From Phallusia mammillata (lineage: Eukaryota): 64,000 nt of DNA. Position 1 is the stretch's first letter. Every line of letters starts with the position of its first letter. Below are positions 31,771 through 58,854 of this stretch, piece by piece. A program made the translations under genes and the position numbers. The DNA lies in NCBI GenBank assembly GCA_965637545.1, contig OZ281496.1, positions 26,970,001 to 27,034,000 on the forward strand. Direction: 5' to 3'. Under the pieces are notes generated by a model. It saw only the letters and a program-made list of their open reading frames with translations, had not been told where the DNA came from and did no database searches.

Positions 31771-36478
<4,708 letters not shown>

Positions 36479-39553: not shown

Positions 39554-42500
39554 TTACAAGGCATAGATGTTGTCACTGGTGGTAACGTCAACAACAAGTG
39601 TTCCATTCATTCTCTTGTCCGACAGCTTGCCACGCCCAAACAGTGGCACCTCCATTGACTTGCCAGAGGCATCTATGGTACCTGACATGGTGCCTTGACC
39701 CATGAAACTGTCACATAACATTCCATCAGAGTAGACCTAAAGCATTAAATGCTGTTGGAGTTATCAAAGTACAGCAAAGTCATGTAGATAAACTGGGGTT
39801 GGTTATTGTTAAAAATTGGTCACAGAAGTATTTCAGGACAAAATTTACAAATTTTGGGACAGTTAAATATGTGGAAAAATAAGCTTAAAAAAAAACTTAA
39901 AATTTGTTTAAAGACATCACAGTTTTCAGAAAATGCACACCTACCTCACAATCATCTATCATTTTTGTTACCATTTACATCTAAAGCATACATACACCTT
40001 GTTTCGGAACCTTAATTGCATCTCATTTTAACAATAACAAATGTTCTCAAATTTTAAAAAAAGTTAGGAGAATATGAATGAAGGAATCAAGTTGGGGGGT
40101 ATATGAGGTTAAGAGTGTTCACAGGTGCTAAGAAGCACTGTGATTGAACACCACATATCTTACAGAATACATGATAACTGAGTTTGGTTTCTTCCTGTAA
40201 AACAATGCAGAACAGTTGAATTTGGGATCAGCATCCTTCTTGAAAGTCTTGGACTTCACAAACTCCCCTTCACAGCCGATCAGCACATAAATATCAGCCA
40301 CTGTATCACAAGATACAAAATTATATTGTTTTTGAATTACAAGACTGGATTTGGTTAATCTGAATCTTTGCTCAAATCGGACTAAACTTGAGGTACAAAT
40401 GATTTGTAAAGTGGTTTAACTAATCGACATCGGATAAAACAGATCATCACCTAACCAGGAGTTTTATTTAGTCCAAACTGGTCCGAATTAACCAAGGTTT
40501 ACTGTATATCCCAAGTGGTTTGTCTTGTTCATGACTTGATAGCAATGTAAAGTCATTTTCTACAAGACCAAAGTCTGTGTACAGCATACTGCACTCTAGA
40601 TGTTGTGCGTTATATTTAACTTAAGATATCATAAAGCTTTAATATTTTTAAGCTTTAAAGAAAGCTGATAATAATGCATTGTTTTTAGGGTGCAGTTAAC
40701 ACAGGTAGCAAGTATCAAGAGACTGTGATATCCTATCATATTTTTCATGTGGTTGCATTACTATATAGACCATGATAAGCAGCATTAGATATGTATGCTC
40801 AGTATAAACACGATATTATGTGAAGCAGGTATGGTAACAATGTGCAAGCAGCCCACAAGCAAGTTAAAATCGATAATCACATATTTACATTTTCTTATAA
40901 TTTGTTTGAGAAAAAAAGATAATGAGAGGAAAACTGAAAACTTCTAGACTTTAATTTCACACTGGTTGGATAACAGACTTACCGCTACCATCTGGTTTGC
41001 TGCAGTTTCTTCCCAAGACCACTTTGGTTGATGTGACCATTGTTGGGTAACCAGTGCAGAATGCAAAGCAGCCCTTGTCGGGGTATTTCGGCAAAAGAGC
41101 ACTACGTAAAGATATAAATGACAAACTGAAGTATCATGCCAAAAATATCCATACACATATCAATATTGGGTAATAAGTGCTCATGTATATTGCTTATTTA
41201 GGTAGAAAAAGAGGAACATACAGTCAAGTGTATATTAAATATTGCAAACCTGTTTGACATTGGTTGCAAAAGACCAATACAACTTGACACTAATTTAAGG
41301 TTTAATAGGGTAAATGGGGTTCCTCTGTTATGTCTCTGCAAATCTATAACCCTTAATGGATTTAATTGATTCTTAAGTGCTACCGGTGATTTTATTTACA
41401 TTTAATTATTACACAGTTGCCATTTTTAGTATTTTAGTGATTTGTACTGCATCATGAACCCATTTAACTGAGCAAATCTGAAGCACAAATAGGTCTTACC
41501 TTGCATTAAGCGATGTTTTGCAATAAAGTCGCAGAAGGAACTGGCCATCTACACCAGCTTCCTGAGTGGTGGGAATTACCACATATCTGCCCTGATAAAA
41601 TAAAATCGGAAAAACTTGTGAAAACTTACTTTGTCTAAAAATGCAGATTATAAATCTTATAAAGGTTCAGAATTTTTGTGACACCATACATTTTCACCTT
41701 TTTATGGCCTAAAGTAACCTAAGAATACTTTATGTCTAAATCATACACTTTAATTAAACAAATTCATATATTTTTTACACTTTACACTTCTGCATTGACC
41801 TTTTAACCTATGGTAACCTTGGAAGACCTCTTATCTAAATTGCACCAATCAAATTGTTGTTTAAACTGTTGTGTTAAGTTTTTGGGACATAGAATACAAA
41901 TGTACTTACAATGACATACAAAAGTCAGCTATACATTTAGCAGCGTCACAATCAACACATCAAAAAGTAAAATCAAAATACATAACACAAGGGTGTTATT
42001 ATCTGTAACACCATTAAGTATTGCACAACATTTACTACAGACCTTTTGTAGTTCAAGTTTTCCAAAGGTGCATCGCTGTTGCAGATAAGGATAATCTTTG
42101 CCCTTCTCTAAAAGTTTGTTGACCCTGTATATCCGATTCTCTTCGATCTAAACAAAGACAGATCCCTGCTTTGGCAACTCGACAGGTGGATTAATGACCA
42201 CACAAAAATTAAACAGGAAGTCTAATACATTTTTCATGTTTTTCGATAGGTGGGGTGTGGTGTGTTTTCCTGTGCTAATCGTGAAGCTGTGCTGAAGTGT
42301 ATATAACTTATACTTGGCAGTGAAAACAAAGCACGAAATGTCAACAGCATGTTTTGGTAATGCAGCAAATACAAAACTAGCGCAGTGTCAAAATCCAAAG
42401 AATGGGGCTACCTTAAGATTGGCTGCAGGTTTTTAATCGTTGATAATACAACTAAACAAATCAATTATAACATTAATAAAAAGACAACACAAAAGACTGG

Positions 42501-45500
42501 TGAATGTACACAATAGCAATTAAACCTTTAAAAATACAAATTATTGAGTTGTAAATGGATAATTTAACCAAAAGAAAGTAATTGTTTGTTTTTCTTTGTA
42601 CAAATATCCAACAACAAAAATTATCCTTAAACAGTAAAATAATGTTAGCTTAAAATCAATCACTAACTGTTTTCTTTATTTCAGCATGATAAAAATAATT
42701 AGAACAACAATTAAATCAGACATTATATATTCAGTAATAAGGACTTGGTGGTCATTAACTTGTTTACCTTGATTACATGAAACCCAATAGTGAGAACATT
42801 TGGTTCAGATATGTTGCAGTGCTGTGTTTCTTTTTGTTGCAACTGTACAAGAACACTTCCTTTGTTGTCGTCGGTGATATCGAAGCGAAATTGAGGATTT
42901 TGCACAAAAGTTTCCTGCAAAAACAAAACAAGTGAGCTTGTTTTGATGCGTAATTCTCCAGCTGAGGTGGGGTAAGCACTATTCAATCAGTTTTTAATTT
43001 TATTTTGGTCACACAGTTGATTTACCACACTGATTGAAATATATGATTGTTGAAAATAAGAAAAAATATGCAATTTTGCTTTTCTAAATAAAATGCTACA
43101 TTGTCGGAGTACGTTCACAATAAATGTGGTTACTTAAAACGCAAAGCTTAGTTAAACTCAAACTCAAAAGGCTTTCATTGTTAATAAGTCAAAATTTATA
43201 TTTGAAAAGATGTGCTTTAAAACAACATAACTGGCCACTACATGCATTGTTTGAAGAATTTTAGTATTTTTGCGCATTAAAGCTGCTATAAATTTATTGT
43301 TATTGACAAAAATTATAGGTATGACTTGTTTTGACAAAATAATGCACATTTTCAGCCTCTAAGCATGTTTGAATAGAAAAGCCGACGGCGTGAGCAGAGA
43401 AAATGAGAACAGGATATTACCCCGCCGCAATAAAATCATTTACAGAACATAACAATAGTTCACACAATGGGATGAGAACTTAGGAAATGATGAAAATTTG
43501 TTGTAGTCACGAACAAATTACATGACAGGCATGCTACAGCAGAATGAATGACAAAGTGATGACAGTTACCTTGTGGGACCCAGGGTATCTTTGAATCTTT
43601 GTACACAACATAACACTAAGTTACTGTTATACAGTGGTTATATTACCTGTTAAAATCATCAAAAGTTAACGAGTTAATTAAATTTTTGGTGCAATGTTTT
43701 ACCAAACGCCGGTGTACTTGAAAAGGGGCTTAAAAACAGATATAACAAATACACCGATATTTTGCAGTTACATGAACTTTTTCCATAATACTACACAACA
43801 TGTTCTAAACTTTGCAAAAAAGTACATTTATAATGCGCAATTTCATGGAAATTTTTTTGGTTAAATACTTTTTAGTCCTTTGCTCCAGCATTTTTGATTG
43901 TTTTACTAAGTACAGGGAACATTTATTTAAGACTTTAATGAGAAACCTATATAAAAGTTGGGATACTGGTTTTATGGTGAAGATAAAAAAAATACCATGT
44001 TCATTTCCAGGCATCCACCGGCAGTATTGACAGCAGGGTCAATGTCGGTTTTCCATGATTCAAAAAAGAAAGCTTCTCTCCATGCACCACCAAGCCATGT
44101 TGTGGACTGCATAATGCGGCAAATCGATAAATCAGTGAAGAATTTGCAAAAGTCGTCGAAAGACATCCTGATAAACAAAGATAAGAAGTTAATTGAAACC
44201 AGTAGTACCGAAAATCATTTGGAAAAAAATGTTTAGATTGATTGTTTTTGACAAACTGAAGTTGTTTAAAACCATTTAAACTGTTTACTAACCAGAATTC
44301 GCCATCAGAGTCAAAGGTCAAGCCCATTTTCTTCTGTTCGGACTTGCTAATTTCTTTCCACTCAGCAGAACTGTAAAATTGCACAAGCTTAATTTTTTCA
44401 ACAGAATTACCCAATTTGTAGTTAAAAGAACCTAAATAAACGTCTTTCAATTGTATGAATGTACAGGCAATAAATGTGTAGTACTGCATAAATAAGTGAC
44501 TCTTATTAACAATAAAATAGTTTGAGTCAAATTGTTGGTGGTTTTCTAATGCTGTACATATTTCAATATTCATAGGTCTCAGATTGTATAGGTTGTTTAA
44601 ATTTGAACAGCAAATGTTTGAACATAACAAACAAATTACTTGTCACTCCATTTTCCACTCCATTCTTTTGTCCCTTCTGGATTCCGAAGTCTAACCAGCC
44701 GGATGCGATCAGATCTAAATACAATGGGGTTTTGGACATTTAAAGGATGTTAATCTATGCGTTGGATTGACACAAGCATTTCACATTTTAACTAAACATT
44801 CTAGTTATAGAAACAATGTAAAATAGTTTAGTCGCTAAACAGGAAATGTTGTTCATTTAATTTTCATTGTTATCAGCAAAAAACCTGAACATTTTATGTT
44901 CACATTGTTTCTGATATATGTGATCAAAAACAGGTGCAATAAAAAATGTGTATGTTTACAATTATTTTTACAAAAAGCAGTCAACATAATGTATCTGCAA
45001 AAAACGAACTTGCATTTTGCCCTAGGCACTGGCTCTAAATCAGTGGTTCTCAAACTTTTTTATTGTCGGGGCCAAATGGTATTTTTTAAGTGTGTAGGGA
45101 GCCGCAAAAAAACGAAACTTTGAGAAAATCACTAAAGATTATGACTTTAAAAGCTAAAATAGCAATCTTTGGTGGTTTTCTGAGGTCTGGTGCGAGCCGC
45201 AAAATAAGTAGTTGGGAGCCGCATGCGGCCCTGAAAACCGAGTTTGAGAACCACTGCTCTAAATGGAATGCTGCCTTTGTCACTATAATTATCATCTTTG
45301 ACAAACTAGCAATAATATGTAACCTTTTTAGGCTGCAAATATAAATATTTTTGTCCAGGTTTGAACTTACTTGAAAAAGCTTAGTAGTCCTGTTCCCAGT
45401 TTAATCTCTTTGATAGCATTTACAGCATATGTGTGGCCCAATACCAATCCCTCTGGTGTTTCCGTGCCAAACTCTTCTGGAGTGGGTGGCTTGAAATAAA

Positions 45501-48500
45501 AATATTAATTCATTACAAATTTGTATCCAAAAACAAATTTTTAAAACTTAAATTTGGACAAAGTTTACAAAAAGCTCTAAAAGTAGTTTATGCTTTGAAG
45601 CAAAAGCGTACTACAATTTTTAATTCGAAACAGGAATAAAACAAAATTTCTACTTTAGTTAGTAATAAATTGAAAGGAAAAATACTAGTTTTAAAAGGAT
45701 ATACATTTATAACAGGTTAACAATGAAGCATATCAGTTTTTTTATCTGTTTGGGGTATTTTACTCCTTATTAGACCATAGTTTGGTTGTTAATTTCAACT
45801 GATTCAGGAGAATGAACTGATGTACATATAAAAAGCGGACCCTTAACAACTTACAGTGATCCAACAGGTTGCCATGGAAATGCCTCCAATGGATGTGTCA
45901 GTTAGCTCCATGAACAACTGGTTCTTTGTGTTAGCATCAGTGACTGTGTCACGTATATGTTGTGGCTGAACTATTCCACCAGTTAGATCTTGCAAGATTG
46001 AACCAGCATCCATTGAATTCAACGCTTCATAACACCCAACCAGTCTTCACAGTCATGGAAAACAAAAAAAATAGTGCAAATTCGTGTCCAGAAAATCCAG
46101 AAAAGAAATACAAAATAAAAGTTTTGCTTAACAAGCAAAAAGTTAGTGCAAATGTATACCCAATTAAATGAAACAGCTGAAACAGTTTTGTTATTAGACA
46201 ATAAAATGTAAAAAAAGAAAGATTCTTGCTTCTGATCAGTAGAATATTAGCTTTTTTCCACTTTTTATCGACAGTCCACCACATGTTTGCTTTTTGCAGA
46301 AACTGACGATGACTGTTTTTTAAAAGGCGAAATATATATTTCTGTTATTCAATGAAAGGATTTATGCTTTTTACCTGTTTTTTATACAACAGTCCAATAT
46401 TCCTGATTAAATGATTTGTTTCTAATGGCATGTCCACAATAAAATGTTGTTAATTTATGGCAAAATTTTGTTGCCATAAGGTTTTTGGGGCAAAGTAACT
46501 AAAATGAAGATTTTGAAATGAAGACAAAACCAAAACTAAAAGATTGAAAACAAAAGCACAGTAGCGTAGGTATAAACACAGTTTGACAATTTCTCAGAAA
46601 ATTGCTTTCAACAGTGGTGGCATTTTAACAGGAAGAGAGTGTTTAGGTGTTTCCTTAGCTGCATAGATATGGCCACAAACCTTTGCTTCTTTAAAATTAT
46701 AAACAAAAACACCCTATAGTATCCCATACCTACAGTTCTATACGATACAGTATATATAGTTTGTATTACATTGAACACTCAATATCAAAGTTGGTGTGAT
46801 AAAGATTTTTTATTGTTTATAGTCAGGGTTGCCATACCGTCCTTATTTCTAAGATTTGTCCTTTTTTTGAAGGGTTATGTCTTAGAAAAGTTTATTGTCC
46901 TTATTTCTAAGAAATGTCCTTATTTTTGACTGTAGTCCTTATTTTGTCTTATTTTCAACAGTTACTATAGTCAAACAAGTAAAAGTAACTGCTACATGTA
47001 AAAGTAAACCTAGACCCGGCCTATTGTGAGATGCACTTAGTATTTTCTACGAACAACGAGTTGCTGGAACGGATTGTTTCTGGCCATAAAAGTGCAAATA
47101 TTATGTCATGGCTCGTATAAATGCAAAGATTTGTTCAATAACGTTTGTTTCGTTTCACACAATAATTTAAAGTTTCGGTTGTCCTTATTTTGGGTTTCAA
47201 GTCGATGGCAACCCTGTTTATAGTGCACAAAATCTTGTTAAACCATGTCATTATGTAAAAGCAGTTGATTATCCTTTTTTTGCCAACCAAGTTTTAAATT
47301 AATGGCATATTTTAAATGCACTTTGACATAAAATTTACTGATGTATTTTGTTAGATTTTTGTCGTTCAACAGCCACAAAACATTGGGTTAAAAATCTTTA
47401 AACTTACTTCGCATAAGCCTTCTCCATTAGTGCACTCCAAAATTCATTGCTTTCAGTGGAGTTAACACCACACAGCTTTCCATCTTTACATGGAAGTCTG
47501 TCATCTACTACTACCTCAATCCATACACCAAACCTCCAAAAGCTAAAACATATGAAACATTTGTTGCAGTTGATAATTAGACTGATAGTAAAAGCAAAAA
47601 AAGAGTTCAGTAGCTCGTTTTAAGTGTCACTGGGTAAAATAGCAACCAGTACAGTTAATAAACACTTACCCTTTATTTTTATTTGTTGGTATGTATCCAT
47701 GCCCCCATATACGTTAAAGACAACCGCAAGAAACATTAAACAAGCCATGTTACATGGCCATGCTGCCAATAATTTGCATTTCACAATGTATAACATGATA
47801 TAACACAGTCTGGAACATGCCATGTACACATGACTTGTAGAATAACACTGCAGGTTTAAGGTAACAATATATGCATGCAAAACTTACTTTATAGAAAGTA
47901 TATACAAACACATATATATATATATATTACCGAAATCTAAAAACACCAGAGTAATCTCCTGGTCTTTCTGTGTTCCACTCTTGAGTAGAAATATCAGGAA
48001 CAACCTGAAAAGTTTGGATGTTAAAGTTTAGTCGAAGTACGGTTTCACAAATTCACTATGTAAGATTTCTTGTTCAAACCAGCTAGATGGTGCAAATTTG
48101 AGCTACTAACAGGGTGATAGAGCAAGCAAAAGAATGATGGTGTAAACATTTTAAAATTATCTATTGTCTTCCACCAACAACTAAAATCCCCCCCTCATTC
48201 CATTGGGTTGGAGCCATTTTTCTTAAGTTGCTTGCTCAGGAAAACACAAGTGGATGAGAGAGGATTAGAACCAACAAACTTATGAACACAAAGTCTTAGC
48301 CTAAGTTATTTGTTTACTTACTCTTTTCCACAAATCTTCATAGTTGGCCAGAACTGAACATGCTGCAATAAATGAGGAGCTACCAAACTCTCCACGAATC
48401 AAATCCATGGACGAGGTCCCTTCAATAACCAACCGTGGTGCATTACACAATTCCTACAAGAGATTGAACATTAGTATTAAAAGCTTCAACAAATTATTGG

Positions 48501-48683
48501 GCATCTTACGGAAGGTCTTTTCCACACAATTGAACCAGCATCAGTGTTCTTTAAAAACAAACTTGTAGCCAAAGGTTTGAATTCAGGATCCTCAAAAGGC
48601 TGAGAACTGTCAATGCATTGTTTGCGAATGACTTGGTAATGTTGGTTAGTGTAATACTCCAAGTTTTTCTGATAGTAATCCAT
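39554..48683 (-). CDS. CAPN5/6-like: Calpain-5/6-type protein (CysPc + C2L + C-terminal C2), predicted catalytically inactive
   Basis: Motifs [29 protein letters not shown] (canonical DL-QG-LGNCWF-AAC), [53 protein letters not shown]. The C-terminal C2 ends ...TSDNIYAL* (TAA at 39556-39554). No penta-EF-hand domain. Confidence 0.93.
40360..40504. mobile_element. Tc1/mariner (Tigger-like) MITE, family D copy 2
   Basis: The reverse complement aligns with 17619-17772. The right end GTCCGAATTAACCAAGGTTTACTG is followed by TA. Confidence 0.75.
45041..45256. mobile_element. hAT (Charlie/Buster-type) MITE, family G (216 bp)
   Basis: Perfect TIR CAGTGGTTCTCAAACT/AGTTTGAGAACCACTG. Perfect TSD CTCTAAAT at 45033-45040 and 45257-45264. 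Confidence 0.93.
46824..47216. mobile_element. hAT-type MITE, family H (393 bp)
   Basis: TIR CAGGGTTGCCAT/ATGGCAACCCTG. Perfect TSD TTTATAGT at 46816-46823 and 47217-47224. GTCCTTATTT subterminal repeats. Confidence 0.92.
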
Positions 48684-50860
48684 TTCACTGCAACCCAGCA
48701 ATAACAGTTGTTTTTTTAATATAAAACTTGCAACAATCTGCAAAGAAAAACAAAACAAAGAAAAAGTGTGGATCTTACAAATATAGTTTTTTTTGTCCCT
48801 CTAATGTGGAAATTGTAAATCACTAAAGTGGAAATCTTGTATGCTTTTTGGTTCAACATGCTATCGAATTAAACAGGATTTACAAAATTAAACAAAACAA
48901 AGCACAAGGTTTTACTATCACAGTGAAGGACAGTTCTTATTTGTAAACTTATCAACAAAACTTCATATTTTTAGCTCAAGAAGCCTTGTTTAAATTTAAA
49001 CATGCCTACAGAGAACTTGACATGTACTGTAAAGAAAACAGGTTCTTTCACCAGACGAAATAACTCAAGCCAAAATAAACAGTTAAAGTTCTCTATTAAT
49101 TCCTGAAATAAATTTTAAATCGACTCTTATAAGAATCAAAAACGTTTATCAAATTATACTTTGGTTCAGTTACAATCAGCATAGCCTGGTTATTTTTTGG
49201 TTGTTAGGGACAAATAAAAGTACGCCGAATTTAGTCTGTTATACCTTGTTAGCTTCAACTTCGCTACCACACGCTGCAGTGTGCACATTTGGTAGCCTTC
49301 TGACGTGATCATTAAACCGTGACGACGACAACACCGGATGCTTACTCACGCGTGTCTATAAAATAGAAATCATACAAAACAAAAACAATTTTTTAGTGCA
49401 GACATTTTTAACACTTTTGTAACTCAAAAATTTGTAATTTTAAGAAATTCTACTAATTGCATGTTGCAGATGAATTAAAAAACAACATTTTTGTTGAGTT
49501 ATTTACACTGTAGACCCAAAAATATTTTATTTTTAAAAAGTCGGAATTTTCATTTATTTTTCAGCGCATTTCTAATTCCATAAAAATGCAAAAACTAATC
49601 AATTTTTGGGTTGAGTAGGTTTTTATAGTTAAGCGTTAAGGGCGCTAATGTCAATATACGTGGCCTTGACGAATGCAGAACGCTCCTTAGTGCACGTAAC
49701 CAAAGAGGGGTTCACGGACGCCTGCCATACCGCATTTTTGTGGTCTCCTGCTTAACTGAAAAAGGTAAACGCTTCCGCAGTGATACAAGGTCAGTAAAAA
49801 GCCTAAACCTGAAATTACGTCAGTTAAGTTTTGAACTTACCGAAACGACTCTTGGCGAGACCCAAATGCAAACAGTAGACCCCGCAAAATTGGGGAACCA
49901 GAATTTGTCATTTATGTACCCTTGTTGTATTACAAAGCCAGTGCAATTTAGTTTTACGGCCTCAAAGGTACAATAGCACCGCCAGCACAAGCTTGTAAAA
50001 TGGTCGTCCGTTGGATGCTGTGTTTGCCGACCCCATCGCGTTTTGCGCCCATAAAAATCCCAATGAAACGACACTGGAATCTATTAATTATTTACCTGAG
50101 AAGCTAATTTAACAGACTATTGTTCAGTTTGGCGTGTACGCTTGTTTTATATCACTTTTCTTGGCATATATTTTTTCTATTAGTGTTTAGTCCGCTTGGC
50201 AACCGGCGTGGGGCTGTTGTTAAAAGTTTTGTTGCGAATTGTTCGTGCGTTTTCGGGACAGGTTGTTAGGCAGCAAAAACACACAAGCCTTTTTGTCACC
50301 GAAACAGTCACGTCGTTAGTTGGGTGAAAGCGTTCGCAAAGATTCTAGACAGATCATAGGAAGACGGCCTGCTCAGCATACGCATCTTCACAGTCTCAAC
50401 AAATGAAAAGGAAAAGATAAATAAAGTAGAAAATACGTTTAGGTGGACTTACTGACAAAATTGTAATAGAGATCAGAAGCATAGAGGAGACAAAAAGCTT
50501 TTTATTTGCGTAAATATTCTTCCAGTTTTGTTTCGTTTGGACGTTGGACATTAAAACATGAACGAAACAAATTACATTATGCAGTTATAGATGGCTAGTT
50601 GATTTGCTAAATGGAAGTAAGGTCGAAGTGTTTGCAACGCAAACTAACCATAAATTACAGTCACAGAAAAGTTGCACGATTTTGCTGAGTGTGAATTGAA
50701 AGTTAGGAATAGAAAAGGATGATACAAAACTAGTTCATTTTTGAGTCTTCAAATAGTAAAAAAAATAATAGTAGTTTACATAATGCACAAAAGTGTACAA
50801 AGGGAGGGTTTAGAAATCATTCAAGGAATAACAGGCCCCGGCTTATTCACACAATTATTG

Positions 50861-56767: not shown

Positions 56768-58854
56768 TCAGGGACTAATAAAAGTCAGTTCTCGGCGTTC
56801 GTCGGTCTCTTCGTCGTTCGCTAACTTGTCTTCGTCCTCATCTTCGCCGCCAAGTTCCCCGCGGTTCAACATCCTTTTCTTCTTCATGCGACGATTTTGA
56901 AACCAAATCTTGACTTGTCGGTCGCTTAAGTTAACCCTATGGGCTATTGCCTCTCGCATTTCCCTGCTGATGAACTCGTTCATAGCGAATTCCCTTTCCA
57001 ATTCAGCTAACTGGTACTTGGTGTACGGGCGGCGGCGGCGACGCTGGTGACCGGTGCGGCCGATCGTCGTCATATCAGGGGAGTAATGCTGAGACGGAAC
57101 GCCGGGGCCGTAAGGTGGATGGTGGTGGTGATATGGCTGGTTGACTAGGGCCACTGGGTCGTGAGGAGCGACTGAAGAAAATAATATTATGTCACTATTT
57201 GTACATTTATGGGCTTGTACACTATGCTTGAGATGTGTTTCCACGTGAATTATAATGCGTTCGTTTTTGACGGGGTTTAAACTTTTGCTGGGCCAAAGAG
57301 AGGAAATTAAAAGACATTTTTTGACATTTTTATGAAAAGCACCTACACTTGTGCTACTAGAAGTGTGTGTTCCACAAGTTAACTGAAATTATTATGCGTT
57401 TTGTGACAAAATTACCATAGTGTCATAGTGAAGGAAGAAGATAGTGATTTTTACATTTTGTGCTATACGTTAGGTGCAACACTCGTATGACATTTGAAAT
57501 ATATTTCCTTAAGTGTTTTCAAAACTGTCACACATCCCCTGGCAAACAACAACCCTTTTTGTAAAATATCTGGAGTATCAAAAAAGACATAATACAAAAT
57601 TACATTTTAAATATCGGACGTCCAAACACAATATTAAAGCATGGGTGCCCGCCCTTTTATTTATGACTATAGTTTTCGGTAAGGGCCGATTTTATGCGAA
57701 TTGAAGACATGTTGCTTTATATATGTTTACCAAAGCAATCAGGATTTATTACATGACACAATAAAAAAACTCTTCAAACCAACCTTGAGAAGAGAACGGC
57801 GTAAAATCAGCTGATGGAGCGTGAAGACCGGTTTGGTGGTGATAATGTGGGTAATAAAAATGGGGGTATTGGTGGATTGGCGCACCGTAGTGGTCCACTG
57901 CAAAAAAAACTTATTACTTTTCCGCCAAAATATTCGGCTTCCAGATGAGAAGTTTGACTTACCAGTTCCGAAGTACAAGCCGTCTGTGGAATGACTGGTA
58001 GCAACCGCTGTGGCTTGACTGATCGAGTCAAACTGATGGTATTCGTGGCTGGCTGGGGTATGTGAAACTGAATACCTTGAATGATCCGTGTTTCCAACAT
58101 TACCGTACAAACCCTGTGAAGTTATGCGGGATTTTAAATCGTTTGTGTAGTACCCAGCACCGTGATCTTGCGCCGGTTTGCCGACTGTCGAAAATGCGGG
58201 ATGGATCGGGCTCGACATGTCGGTCTTGACCGGGATCGGTTGCTGCAAAACCCGCCGCGTGATCTCATCGACGCCCGACGTCGGCTGATGTCGGCCATTT
58301 TCCTGGTCGCTTTGGCTCACTGAAGCGAGGGACTTGGGCGAGACGCGCAGCTCCCCTGTTGAATCGGCGCCATCTACAGACTGGGAGTTGCTTACTTTCC
58401 GGTGTATTTCCGGAATGTATGAAGGCACGTTCTCGCCAAAGGAAATAGGTACGGAAGTGTGGTTTTTCCAAGGCTGGTGGGCTTCTGGTTTAATATGCTT
58501 CACCTCCCTTTGCAAATGTTGCACCGAAATTTGATCCTTATGACGGGTGTCGGTTGTTGGCAGAGCCGTGGAATATTTCGGCTGTTCAGACCAGTGGTGA
58601 ATATCTTCCCTACGTTGGTACTGGTGACTTGCAATGTGTCCTAGCTCAGCGTCACTAGGAAGCCTTGATCGCCCCAAATACCCATCTGAAGGGGAATATA
58701 CCTTTGTGGAGTCCATCTGTAAGGGAGGAGGAGCCGAATGTTCAATTGAAATGATATTTGGGGGCAATGATGGGGCAGGATGAGGGTTCCCGTCGCTGAC
58801 AACAAAATTCATGTTTAAGTGGTAATTCCCCGTTGAATCGCTTTGCGCTGTCAT
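56768..58854 (-). CDS. Hox12: Posterior (AbdB-class) Hox gene, ascidian Hox12 (Hox11/12/13) type, 2 coding exons
   Basis: Exon 58854-57963 (donor G|GTAAGT) splices in phase 1 to exon 57171-56768. Homeodomain [60 protein letters not shown]. No YPWM hexapeptide. The Hox12 label relies on remembered similarity to the Ciona gene; posterior-class status is secure. Confidence 0.85.

Follow-up and report, generated by a model that had tools for sequence, protein, structure and literature searches.

A calpain-5/6-type gene on the minus strand (48683..39554) of a 64,000-nt stretch of Phallusia mammillata DNA (contig OZ281496.1, 26,970,001-27,034,000, assembly GCA_965637545.1; hereafter the window, whose numbering is used throughout) very probably encodes an ancient CAPN5/6 pseudoprotease that is kept by selection, acts as a non-proteolytic protein and was inactivated independently of eutherian CAPN6. 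The catalytic centre was destroyed no later than in an ancestor shared by the phlebobranch and aplousobranch ascidians of this sample, and the gene has since been maintained as an intact, expressed open reading frame (ORF) of 15 exons under purifying selection. Loss of the catalytic Cys is not specific to Phallusia, being common to Phallusia, Clavelina, Ciona and a fourth tunicate represented by metagenome contigs.

Gene structure and protein architecture

The gene consists of 15 coding exons joined at canonical splice sites, every intron being GT-AG, and its 1932-nt coding sequence specifies 643 amino acids and a stop codon with no internal stops. An earlier interpretation of the letters of the window (the sequence-only reading) had described an intact frame through about 13 exons; the frame is indeed intact and the number of exons is 15. 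All lie on the minus strand and are given from high to low coordinate:

Exons 1-5: 48683-48510, 48453-48322, 48004-47931, 47542-47408, 46044-45855
Exons 6-10: 45489-45371, 44714-44640, 44370-44293, 44167-43996, 42914-42768
Exons 11-15: 42147-42043, 41591-41500, 41101-40983, 40300-40164, 39736-39554

Since a deposited P. mammillata protein named "calpain-5-like" (CAB3227597.1 / A0A6F9D8U9) is identical to the model at 639 of 643 residues without a gap, all splice junctions of the model are validated. The four differences (N154Y, R278H, L379M and T413A) are all located away from the catalytic site, and the deposited protein, which originates from a different haplotype, carries the same GSSSF at the former active site. 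Intron 1 (48454-48509) is 56 bp long in Phallusia vs 910 bp in Clavelina, the remaining introns ranging from 125 to 1363 bp.

Single exons alone already match the Pfam domains Peptidase_C2 and Calpain_III. In the complete protein, Peptidase_C2 (PF00648) extends over residues 30-343 (1.5e-92, profile positions 1-297 of 297), Calpain_III over residues 363-490 (1.5e-26) and a C-terminal C2 domain over residues 524-600, the latter scoring 20.6 bits in Phallusia and 25.3 bits in Clavelina against a cut-off of 22 bits. The best match of the full-length protein in the PDB is human calpain-5 (6p3q; E 7e-106, over residues 10-351), and with the whole protein matching both Peptidase_C2 and CAPN5 at these values the similarity is not due to chance. 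The gene is a member of the calpain superfamily (MEROPS C2 / Peptidase_C2). Its protease core, C2-like domain III and C-terminal C2 domain constitute the TRA-3/CAPN5/CAPN6 architecture, absence of a penta-EF-hand forming part of the definition applied, and its best full-length matches are CAPN5 and CAPN6 proteins of equal length.

Catalytic-site residues in Phallusia

The Phallusia protein does not possess the intact Cys-His-Asn triad and oxyanion Gln of an active calpain. The sequence-only reading had described a degenerate active-site segment with Cys, Gln and Trp replaced by Ser, Arg and Ser, respectively, had located the Cys codon at 48378-48376 as TCC, and had reported a retained His (in GHTY) and Asn with NPE in place of NPW. 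Each of these observations is reproduced by direct reading of the codons in their exons and by a gap-free alignment to human CAPN5 (6p3q). The positions, all on the minus strand, are:

48322..48453, exon 2, degenerate active-site loop and helix, residues 59-102 (translation, alignment to human CAPN5)
48394..48396, CGT, Arg78 at the oxyanion-hole Gln (alignment)
48376..48378, TCC, Ser84 at the catalytic Cys, human CAPN5 Cys81 (codon read, alignment)
48373..48381, AGC TCC TCA, Ser83-Ser84-Ser85 replacing Asn-Cys-Trp (codon read)
46011..46016, Ser182-Met183 replacing the Gly-Gly of LDGGNTADALVDF, which is invariant in active CAPN5/6 (alignment)
45433..45435, CAC, His254, the catalytic His, kept (GHTY motif)
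44675..44683, Asn286-Pro287-Glu288, catalytic Asn kept (codon 44683-44681), conserved Trp changed to Glu (alignment)

The Gly-Gly pair presumably lines the substrate cleft, as in calpain-inhibitor structures. When the 43-residue piece encoded at 48453..48323 was compared with all PDB chains by phmmer, human calpain-5 (6p3q) was the first match (residues 60-101, E 5.9e-8, gap-free) and the next were calpain-3 cores that had been inactivated in the laboratory and read GDSW or GDAW.

Catalytic positions in other tunicates

Orthologues were identified by several routes. A HMMER search with exon 9 returned the Clavelina lepadiformis "calpain-5-like" protein (XP_076823919.1) besides mostly exon-sized fragments, and word searches returned Ciona intestinalis F6ZVH3. 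The gene of the metagenome tunicate is carried on JGI contigs L056/L057 (exons 1-9) and L003/L004 (exons 7-15), whose overlapping exons are identical; 15 of 15 exons are open and the protein is 63.5% identical to that of Phallusia. These contigs, at 12-32 kb and containing introns, are host tunicate DNA, presumably from samples of tunicate-associated microbiomes. Residues at the catalytic positions are:

Oxyanion Gln: Phallusia R, Clavelina I, Ciona T, metagenome tunicate A
Asn before the Cys: S in Phallusia, Clavelina, Ciona and the metagenome tunicate
Catalytic Cys: Phallusia S, Clavelina S, Ciona P, metagenome tunicate P
Trp after the Cys: Phallusia S, Clavelina S, Ciona A, metagenome tunicate S
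Gly-Gly pair of LDGGNTADALVDF: Phallusia S-M, Clavelina N-L, Ciona N-M, metagenome tunicate F-L
Catalytic His: Phallusia H, Clavelina C, Ciona N, metagenome tunicate Q
NPW motif: Phallusia NPE, Clavelina NPV, metagenome tunicate NPK, Ciona model garbled

Catalytic Asn is retained in every tunicate where it is readable, and the retained His is a peculiarity of Phallusia among the four tunicates. Every one of 174 non-tunicate CAPN5/6-type proteins, from vertebrates, a hemichordate and crustaceans, has Q, N, C, W, GG, H and W in the same columns, and bird, crocodile, gar and coelacanth members retain GNCWF. Phallusia keeps 122 (79%) of the 155 columns conserved to ≥97% in those 174 proteins and changes 33; 26 of the 33 are changed in Clavelina as well, 15 of them to the same residue (hand count).

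At codons 83-85, Phallusia and Clavelina both have AGY-TCN-TCN, and the metagenome tunicate has AGC-CCA-TCA, the Cys position itself being TCA (Ser) in Clavelina and CCA (Pro) in the metagenome tunicate. Each of these codons is one step from AAY-TGY-TGG, Pro requiring one additional step from Ser. As the codon families are common to these species, a single ancestral change fits, and most parsimoniously the site would have been lost once in an ancestor, after which the positions of a useless cleft drifted freely, the His being replaced in three different ways.

Over residues ∼284-392, which include the Asn/NPW region and the last part of the core, Ciona F6ZVH3 resembles no calpain; the stretch looks like a misprediction and not true divergence and was masked in the trees. 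A further Logan contig of 1279 bp (L002, SRR25569784) contains exons 8-10 of a fifth tunicate-like orthologue and, at a core Ca2+ site, has NNNNEFW instead of the (D/E)DGEFW of other calpains; exon 2 lies off this contig.

Phylogenetic position

Maximum-likelihood trees were rooted on crustacean CAPN5-like proteins, classical calpains being left out. The proteins of the four tunicates group as a single clade (100/100), with a long stem of 0.95-0.99 changes per site, outside a vertebrate clade (100/99) that holds CAPN5, CAPN6 and a third paralogue. Deuterostome sequences fall into three well-supported branches at an unresolved fork, namely hemichordate CAPN5-like proteins, tunicates, and the vertebrate CAPN5/CAPN6/third-paralogue group. 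Among vertebrates, three well-supported clades are observed, CAPN5, CAPN6 and a third that includes "calpain-5-like" proteins of shark, coelacanth and caecilian.

The phylogeny places the ascidian gene within the TRA-3/CAPN5/CAPN6 subfamily and does not make it an orthologue of vertebrate CAPN6 specifically. Because tunicates branch outside the vertebrate duplication, CAPN5, CAPN6 and the third paralogue are all co-orthologues of their gene; the ascidian gene therefore predates the CAPN5/CAPN6 duplication. Within CAPN6, the Cys has been lost (to Lys) only in eutherians, marsupial and avian CAPN6 keeping the triad, and three frog and fish TRA-3 homologues keep it also (PMC3731218). Both the eutherian Lys and the retention of Cys in many non-eutherian CAPN6 proteins had been stated in the sequence-only reading, and the bird and crocodile sequences agree. 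Because the tunicate clade lies outside the vertebrate duplication and non-eutherian CAPN6, including that of bird, crocodile and fish, has GNCW, the ascidian and eutherian inactivations are independent, as had been proposed from the window.

Selection and expression

In Clavelina (L001) the gene is divided into the same 15 exons with identical phases, 11 of equal length and the others differing by multiples of three. Comparison of Phallusia with Clavelina by the Nei-Gojobori method (642 codons) gave a proportion of nonsynonymous differences (pN) of 0.32 (nonsynonymous divergence, dN, 0.42) and of synonymous differences (pS) of 0.78; the corresponding values against the metagenome tunicate (625 codons) were pN 0.23 (dN 0.28) and pS 0.89. 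Since pS exceeds 0.75 in both pairs, synonymous sites are saturated and the ratio of dN to synonymous divergence (dS) can be given only as a bound, well below 1. At four-fold sites the observed identity of 0.35 is near the 0.28 that composition predicts. Between Phallusia and Clavelina the two halves of the protease core are the best conserved regions (53% and 56% identity), with 51% in the C2 and 38% in the C2-like domain.

Decay is therefore excluded by an ORF that is intact, introns that are conserved and proteins that remain 50-64% identical although neutral divergence is saturated; frame disruptions, intron loss or a dN/dS near 1, as expected of a pseudogene, are not observed. The sequence-only reading had attributed the intact frame to purifying selection and had proposed an alignment of ascidian orthologues with a dN/dS calculation as a check; with the ORF open in four ascidians, the Cys absent in all of them and the ratio bounded well below 1, the attribution holds.

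Representation of the gene in public sequence data was followed with sampled 31-mers. Eighteen public runs, which come from several studies, contain the full set of nine words sampled from exon 2 (9/9). Over 43900-48800, a stretch of which exons make up 23%, 16 public runs hold 12-19% of the sampled words and two DNA-like runs hold 76-82%. The low-share runs look like transcript data, as their share is close to that of the exons, and three of them, with shares of 13-19%, are among the 18 runs that contain all exon 2 words. Thus, exon 2 as assembled is present in transcript-like data. In the 64-kb window, neither a six-frame motif scan nor tblastn with four active CAPN5/6 proteins detected a second active-site-type exon or a G.CW motif in calpain context.

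Gene neighbourhood

A PAK gene (PBD and Pkinase domains) is located tail-to-tail downstream of the calpain gene in both Phallusia and Clavelina:

31771..36013 (end approximate), plus strand, group-I PAK kinase gene in the window (ORFs; Pfam PBD 2e-25, Pkinase 1.4e-16)
L001 24084-31916, minus strand, PAK gene of Clavelina lepadiformis, tail-to-tail with the calpain gene

As the arrangement is common to both species, the PAK-CAPN5/6 linkage is older than the split of the Phallusia and Clavelina lineages; together with the matching exon structure, it supports orthology of the two calpain genes. Upstream of the calpain gene, an open stretch at 56771-57388 (minus strand) encodes a homeodomain of posterior-Hox type.

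Proposed function

The ancestral changes converted Cys to Ser (later to Pro in two lineages) and removed the oxyanion Gln, the flanking Asn and Trp, the cleft Gly-Gly and NPW; the former cleft positions now vary freely between species, the protease-core fold, C2-like and C2 domains being kept. Rat calpain-2 binds Ca2+ in its core through Ile89, Gly91, Asp96 and Glu175, and through Glu292, Asp299, Gln319 and Glu323 (PMC4631099). These ligands map to I68, G70, D75, E160, E292, D299, D320 and E324 of the Phallusia protein. The metagenome tunicate retains four of the four ligands checked (G70, E160, E292 and D299), with D75 visible in exon 2, and Clavelina has the changes D75N and E292Q. Because the cleft positions vary freely while the core fold, largely the Ca2+ ligands, and the C2 domains are kept, we infer a non-proteolytic role. 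The protein may act as a Ca2+- and/or membrane-responsive binding or scaffold protein which binds partners without cutting them, possibly with a Ca2+-dependent conformational switch and membrane attachment through its C2 domains. CAPN6 stabilises microtubules and regulates Rac1 through GEF-H1 (PMC3731218); by analogy the ascidian protein might share this role, although we consider this doubtful.

Alternative explanations

Several points weigh against interpretation of the gene as a selected pseudoprotease. With dS saturated, dN/dS is a bound, well below 1, and not an estimate; the RNA evidence is indirect, the runs having been guessed to be RNA from their k-mer share; and the Ciona F6ZVH3 model is garbled over residues ∼284-392. 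The sample covers phlebobranch and aplousobranch ascidians, with stolidobranchs, salps and larvaceans outside it, and the age of the loss within tunicates is therefore a lower bound. A CAPN6-like cytoskeletal function is a guess by analogy, proteolytic inactivity of the Phallusia protein is predicted from its residues, and Ser84-His254-Asn286 in Phallusia is formally a nucleophile-base-Asn triad.

The alternative that survives best is that ascidians keep a second, catalytically active CAPN5-type paralogue, the gene studied here being the non-catalytic half of a subfunctionalised pair, a possibility that we regard as somewhat unlikely. Supplementary file 3 of PMC4631099 includes further Ciona proteins with a calpain domain whose peptidase-domain scores are strong, and our searches extend to the best 120 matches only. 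Against this, no second tunicate protein occurs among the best 120 matches of either full-length search, in which each species has one orthologue and only three named tunicate proteins appear, and the conserved PAK synteny marks the copy studied as the ancestral locus. The metagenome contig scan used peptide patterns missing the usual GIFHFRFW and has no bearing on paralogues. A homology search confined to residues 52-127 of the deposited Phallusia protein gave, out of 4 candidates, the query alone and is uninformative on other tunicates. A subfunctionalised duplicate is compatible with a pseudoprotease, altering the evolutionary interpretation and not the nature of the gene.

The converse, that ascidians have no proteolytically active CAPN5/6-type calpain at all and that their sole, PAK-adjacent member has been non-enzymatic for hundreds of millions of years, is in our judgement decidedly unlikely. 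If it were true, a binding or scaffold role would be an ancestral and separable function of CAPN5/6, uncoupled from catalysis twice in chordates and perhaps tied to the Rac/PAK-cytoskeleton axis, as with CAPN6 and GEF-H1, and Ciona or Phallusia embryos would offer a simple system in which to define it.

An active protease using Ser84 as nucleophile with His254 and Asn286, through a cysteine-to-serine catalytic switch, is very improbable. Phallusia does have Ser, His and Asn at the three triad positions and its core Ca2+-binding residues are intact, but the Ser position is Pro in Ciona and the metagenome tunicate, none of the three other species keeps the His (Cys, Asn or Gln stands in its place), and the oxyanion Gln, flanking Trp, cleft Gly-Gly and NPW Trp are all lost and vary between species. 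Replacement of Cys by Ser is the standard way of making a calpain inactive: GDSW is found in PDB chains 1mdw and 6bdt, and Aplysia calpain mutated in this manner fails to autolyse (PMC5650170).

More improbable still is a pseudogene, decaying or recently dead, without a selected function. Loss of the catalytic residues and the length of the tunicate stem would fit such a gene; nevertheless, 15-exon ORFs are intact in lineages with saturated synonymous sites at 50-64% identity and pN of 0.23-0.32, exon words occur in transcript-like runs, and 79% of near-invariant family columns are retained.

Finally, the finding could be an artefact, either because the Cys codon was misassembled or miscalled or because real transcripts use another, unannotated exon 2 in which GNCW is intact; an assembly error and an alternative exon had been named in the sequence-only reading as grounds for its rejection. 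Such an artefact is scarcely conceivable: although support for exon 2 is k-mer presence and not read-level, four adjacent residues of the catalytic loop differ and not a single base, the same residues including GSSSF occur in the independent deposit from another haplotype with four amino-acid differences elsewhere, the 31-mers of exon 2 are found in 18 runs from several studies, the 64-kb window holds no further exon-2-like sequence, and three other species show the same loss.

Comparison with known systems

Inactive calpains are already known as a kind, and ascidian proteins of this type have been deposited under the automatic name "calpain-5-like". Inactive homologues are widespread across eukaryotes, 344 having been found in a UniProt survey (PMC3315469), and 29 of 267 calpains in a published tree are marked inactive, with calpamodulin, androglobin and CLP-3 named (PMC4631099). 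The Ciona orthologue F6ZVH3 is present in the latter as an uncommented line of a match list (supplementary file 3). Supplements of PMC3315469 contain three Oikopleura calpain-like proteins with incomplete triads, which may or may not be of CAPN5/6 type, and no Ciona entry. In full-text literature searches of incomplete coverage, no paper was found to report that the CAPN5/6 gene of ascidians is non-proteolytic. In those other inactive calpains one or more triad residues are replaced, as in the ascidian gene, but they belong to other subfamilies or lineages and none is a chordate co-orthologue of CAPN5/6.

The automatic annotation hides that such proteins cannot be cysteine proteases. A non-proteolytic CAPN5/6 function has so far been understood through eutherian CAPN6 only, in which the loss is young; the ascidian gene, apparently single-copy and linked to PAK, would be a second, much older and independent dead calpain in the sister group of vertebrates. 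It provides a natural experiment on the parts that matter without catalysis, namely the core fold, Ca2+ ligands and C2 domains and not the cleft, in animals that are experimentally tractable (Ciona and Phallusia embryos, clustered regularly interspaced short palindromic repeats (CRISPR) methods and live imaging of microtubules).

The ascidian protein resembles human CAPN5 (6p3q) and Caenorhabditis elegans TRA-3 in domain order, in a length of ∼640 amino acids and in the positions of the core Ca2+ ligands. CAPN5 and TRA-3 are active Ca2+-dependent proteases with QG..GNCW, GHAY and NPW intact, whereas in the ascidian protein neither the nucleophile nor the oxyanion Gln nor the cleft glycines remain. 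With eutherian CAPN6 (calpamodulin) it shares a protease core, C2-like and C-terminal C2 domain, a naturally replaced catalytic Cys, and a gene that is retained and expressed. It differs from CAPN6 in having Ser or Pro and not Lys at the Cys position, in the loss of many more cleft residues, and in branching before the CAPN5/CAPN6 duplication, CAPN6 having lost its Cys in eutherians only; the microtubule/GEF-H1 function is established for CAPN6 of mouse and human only (PMC3731218).

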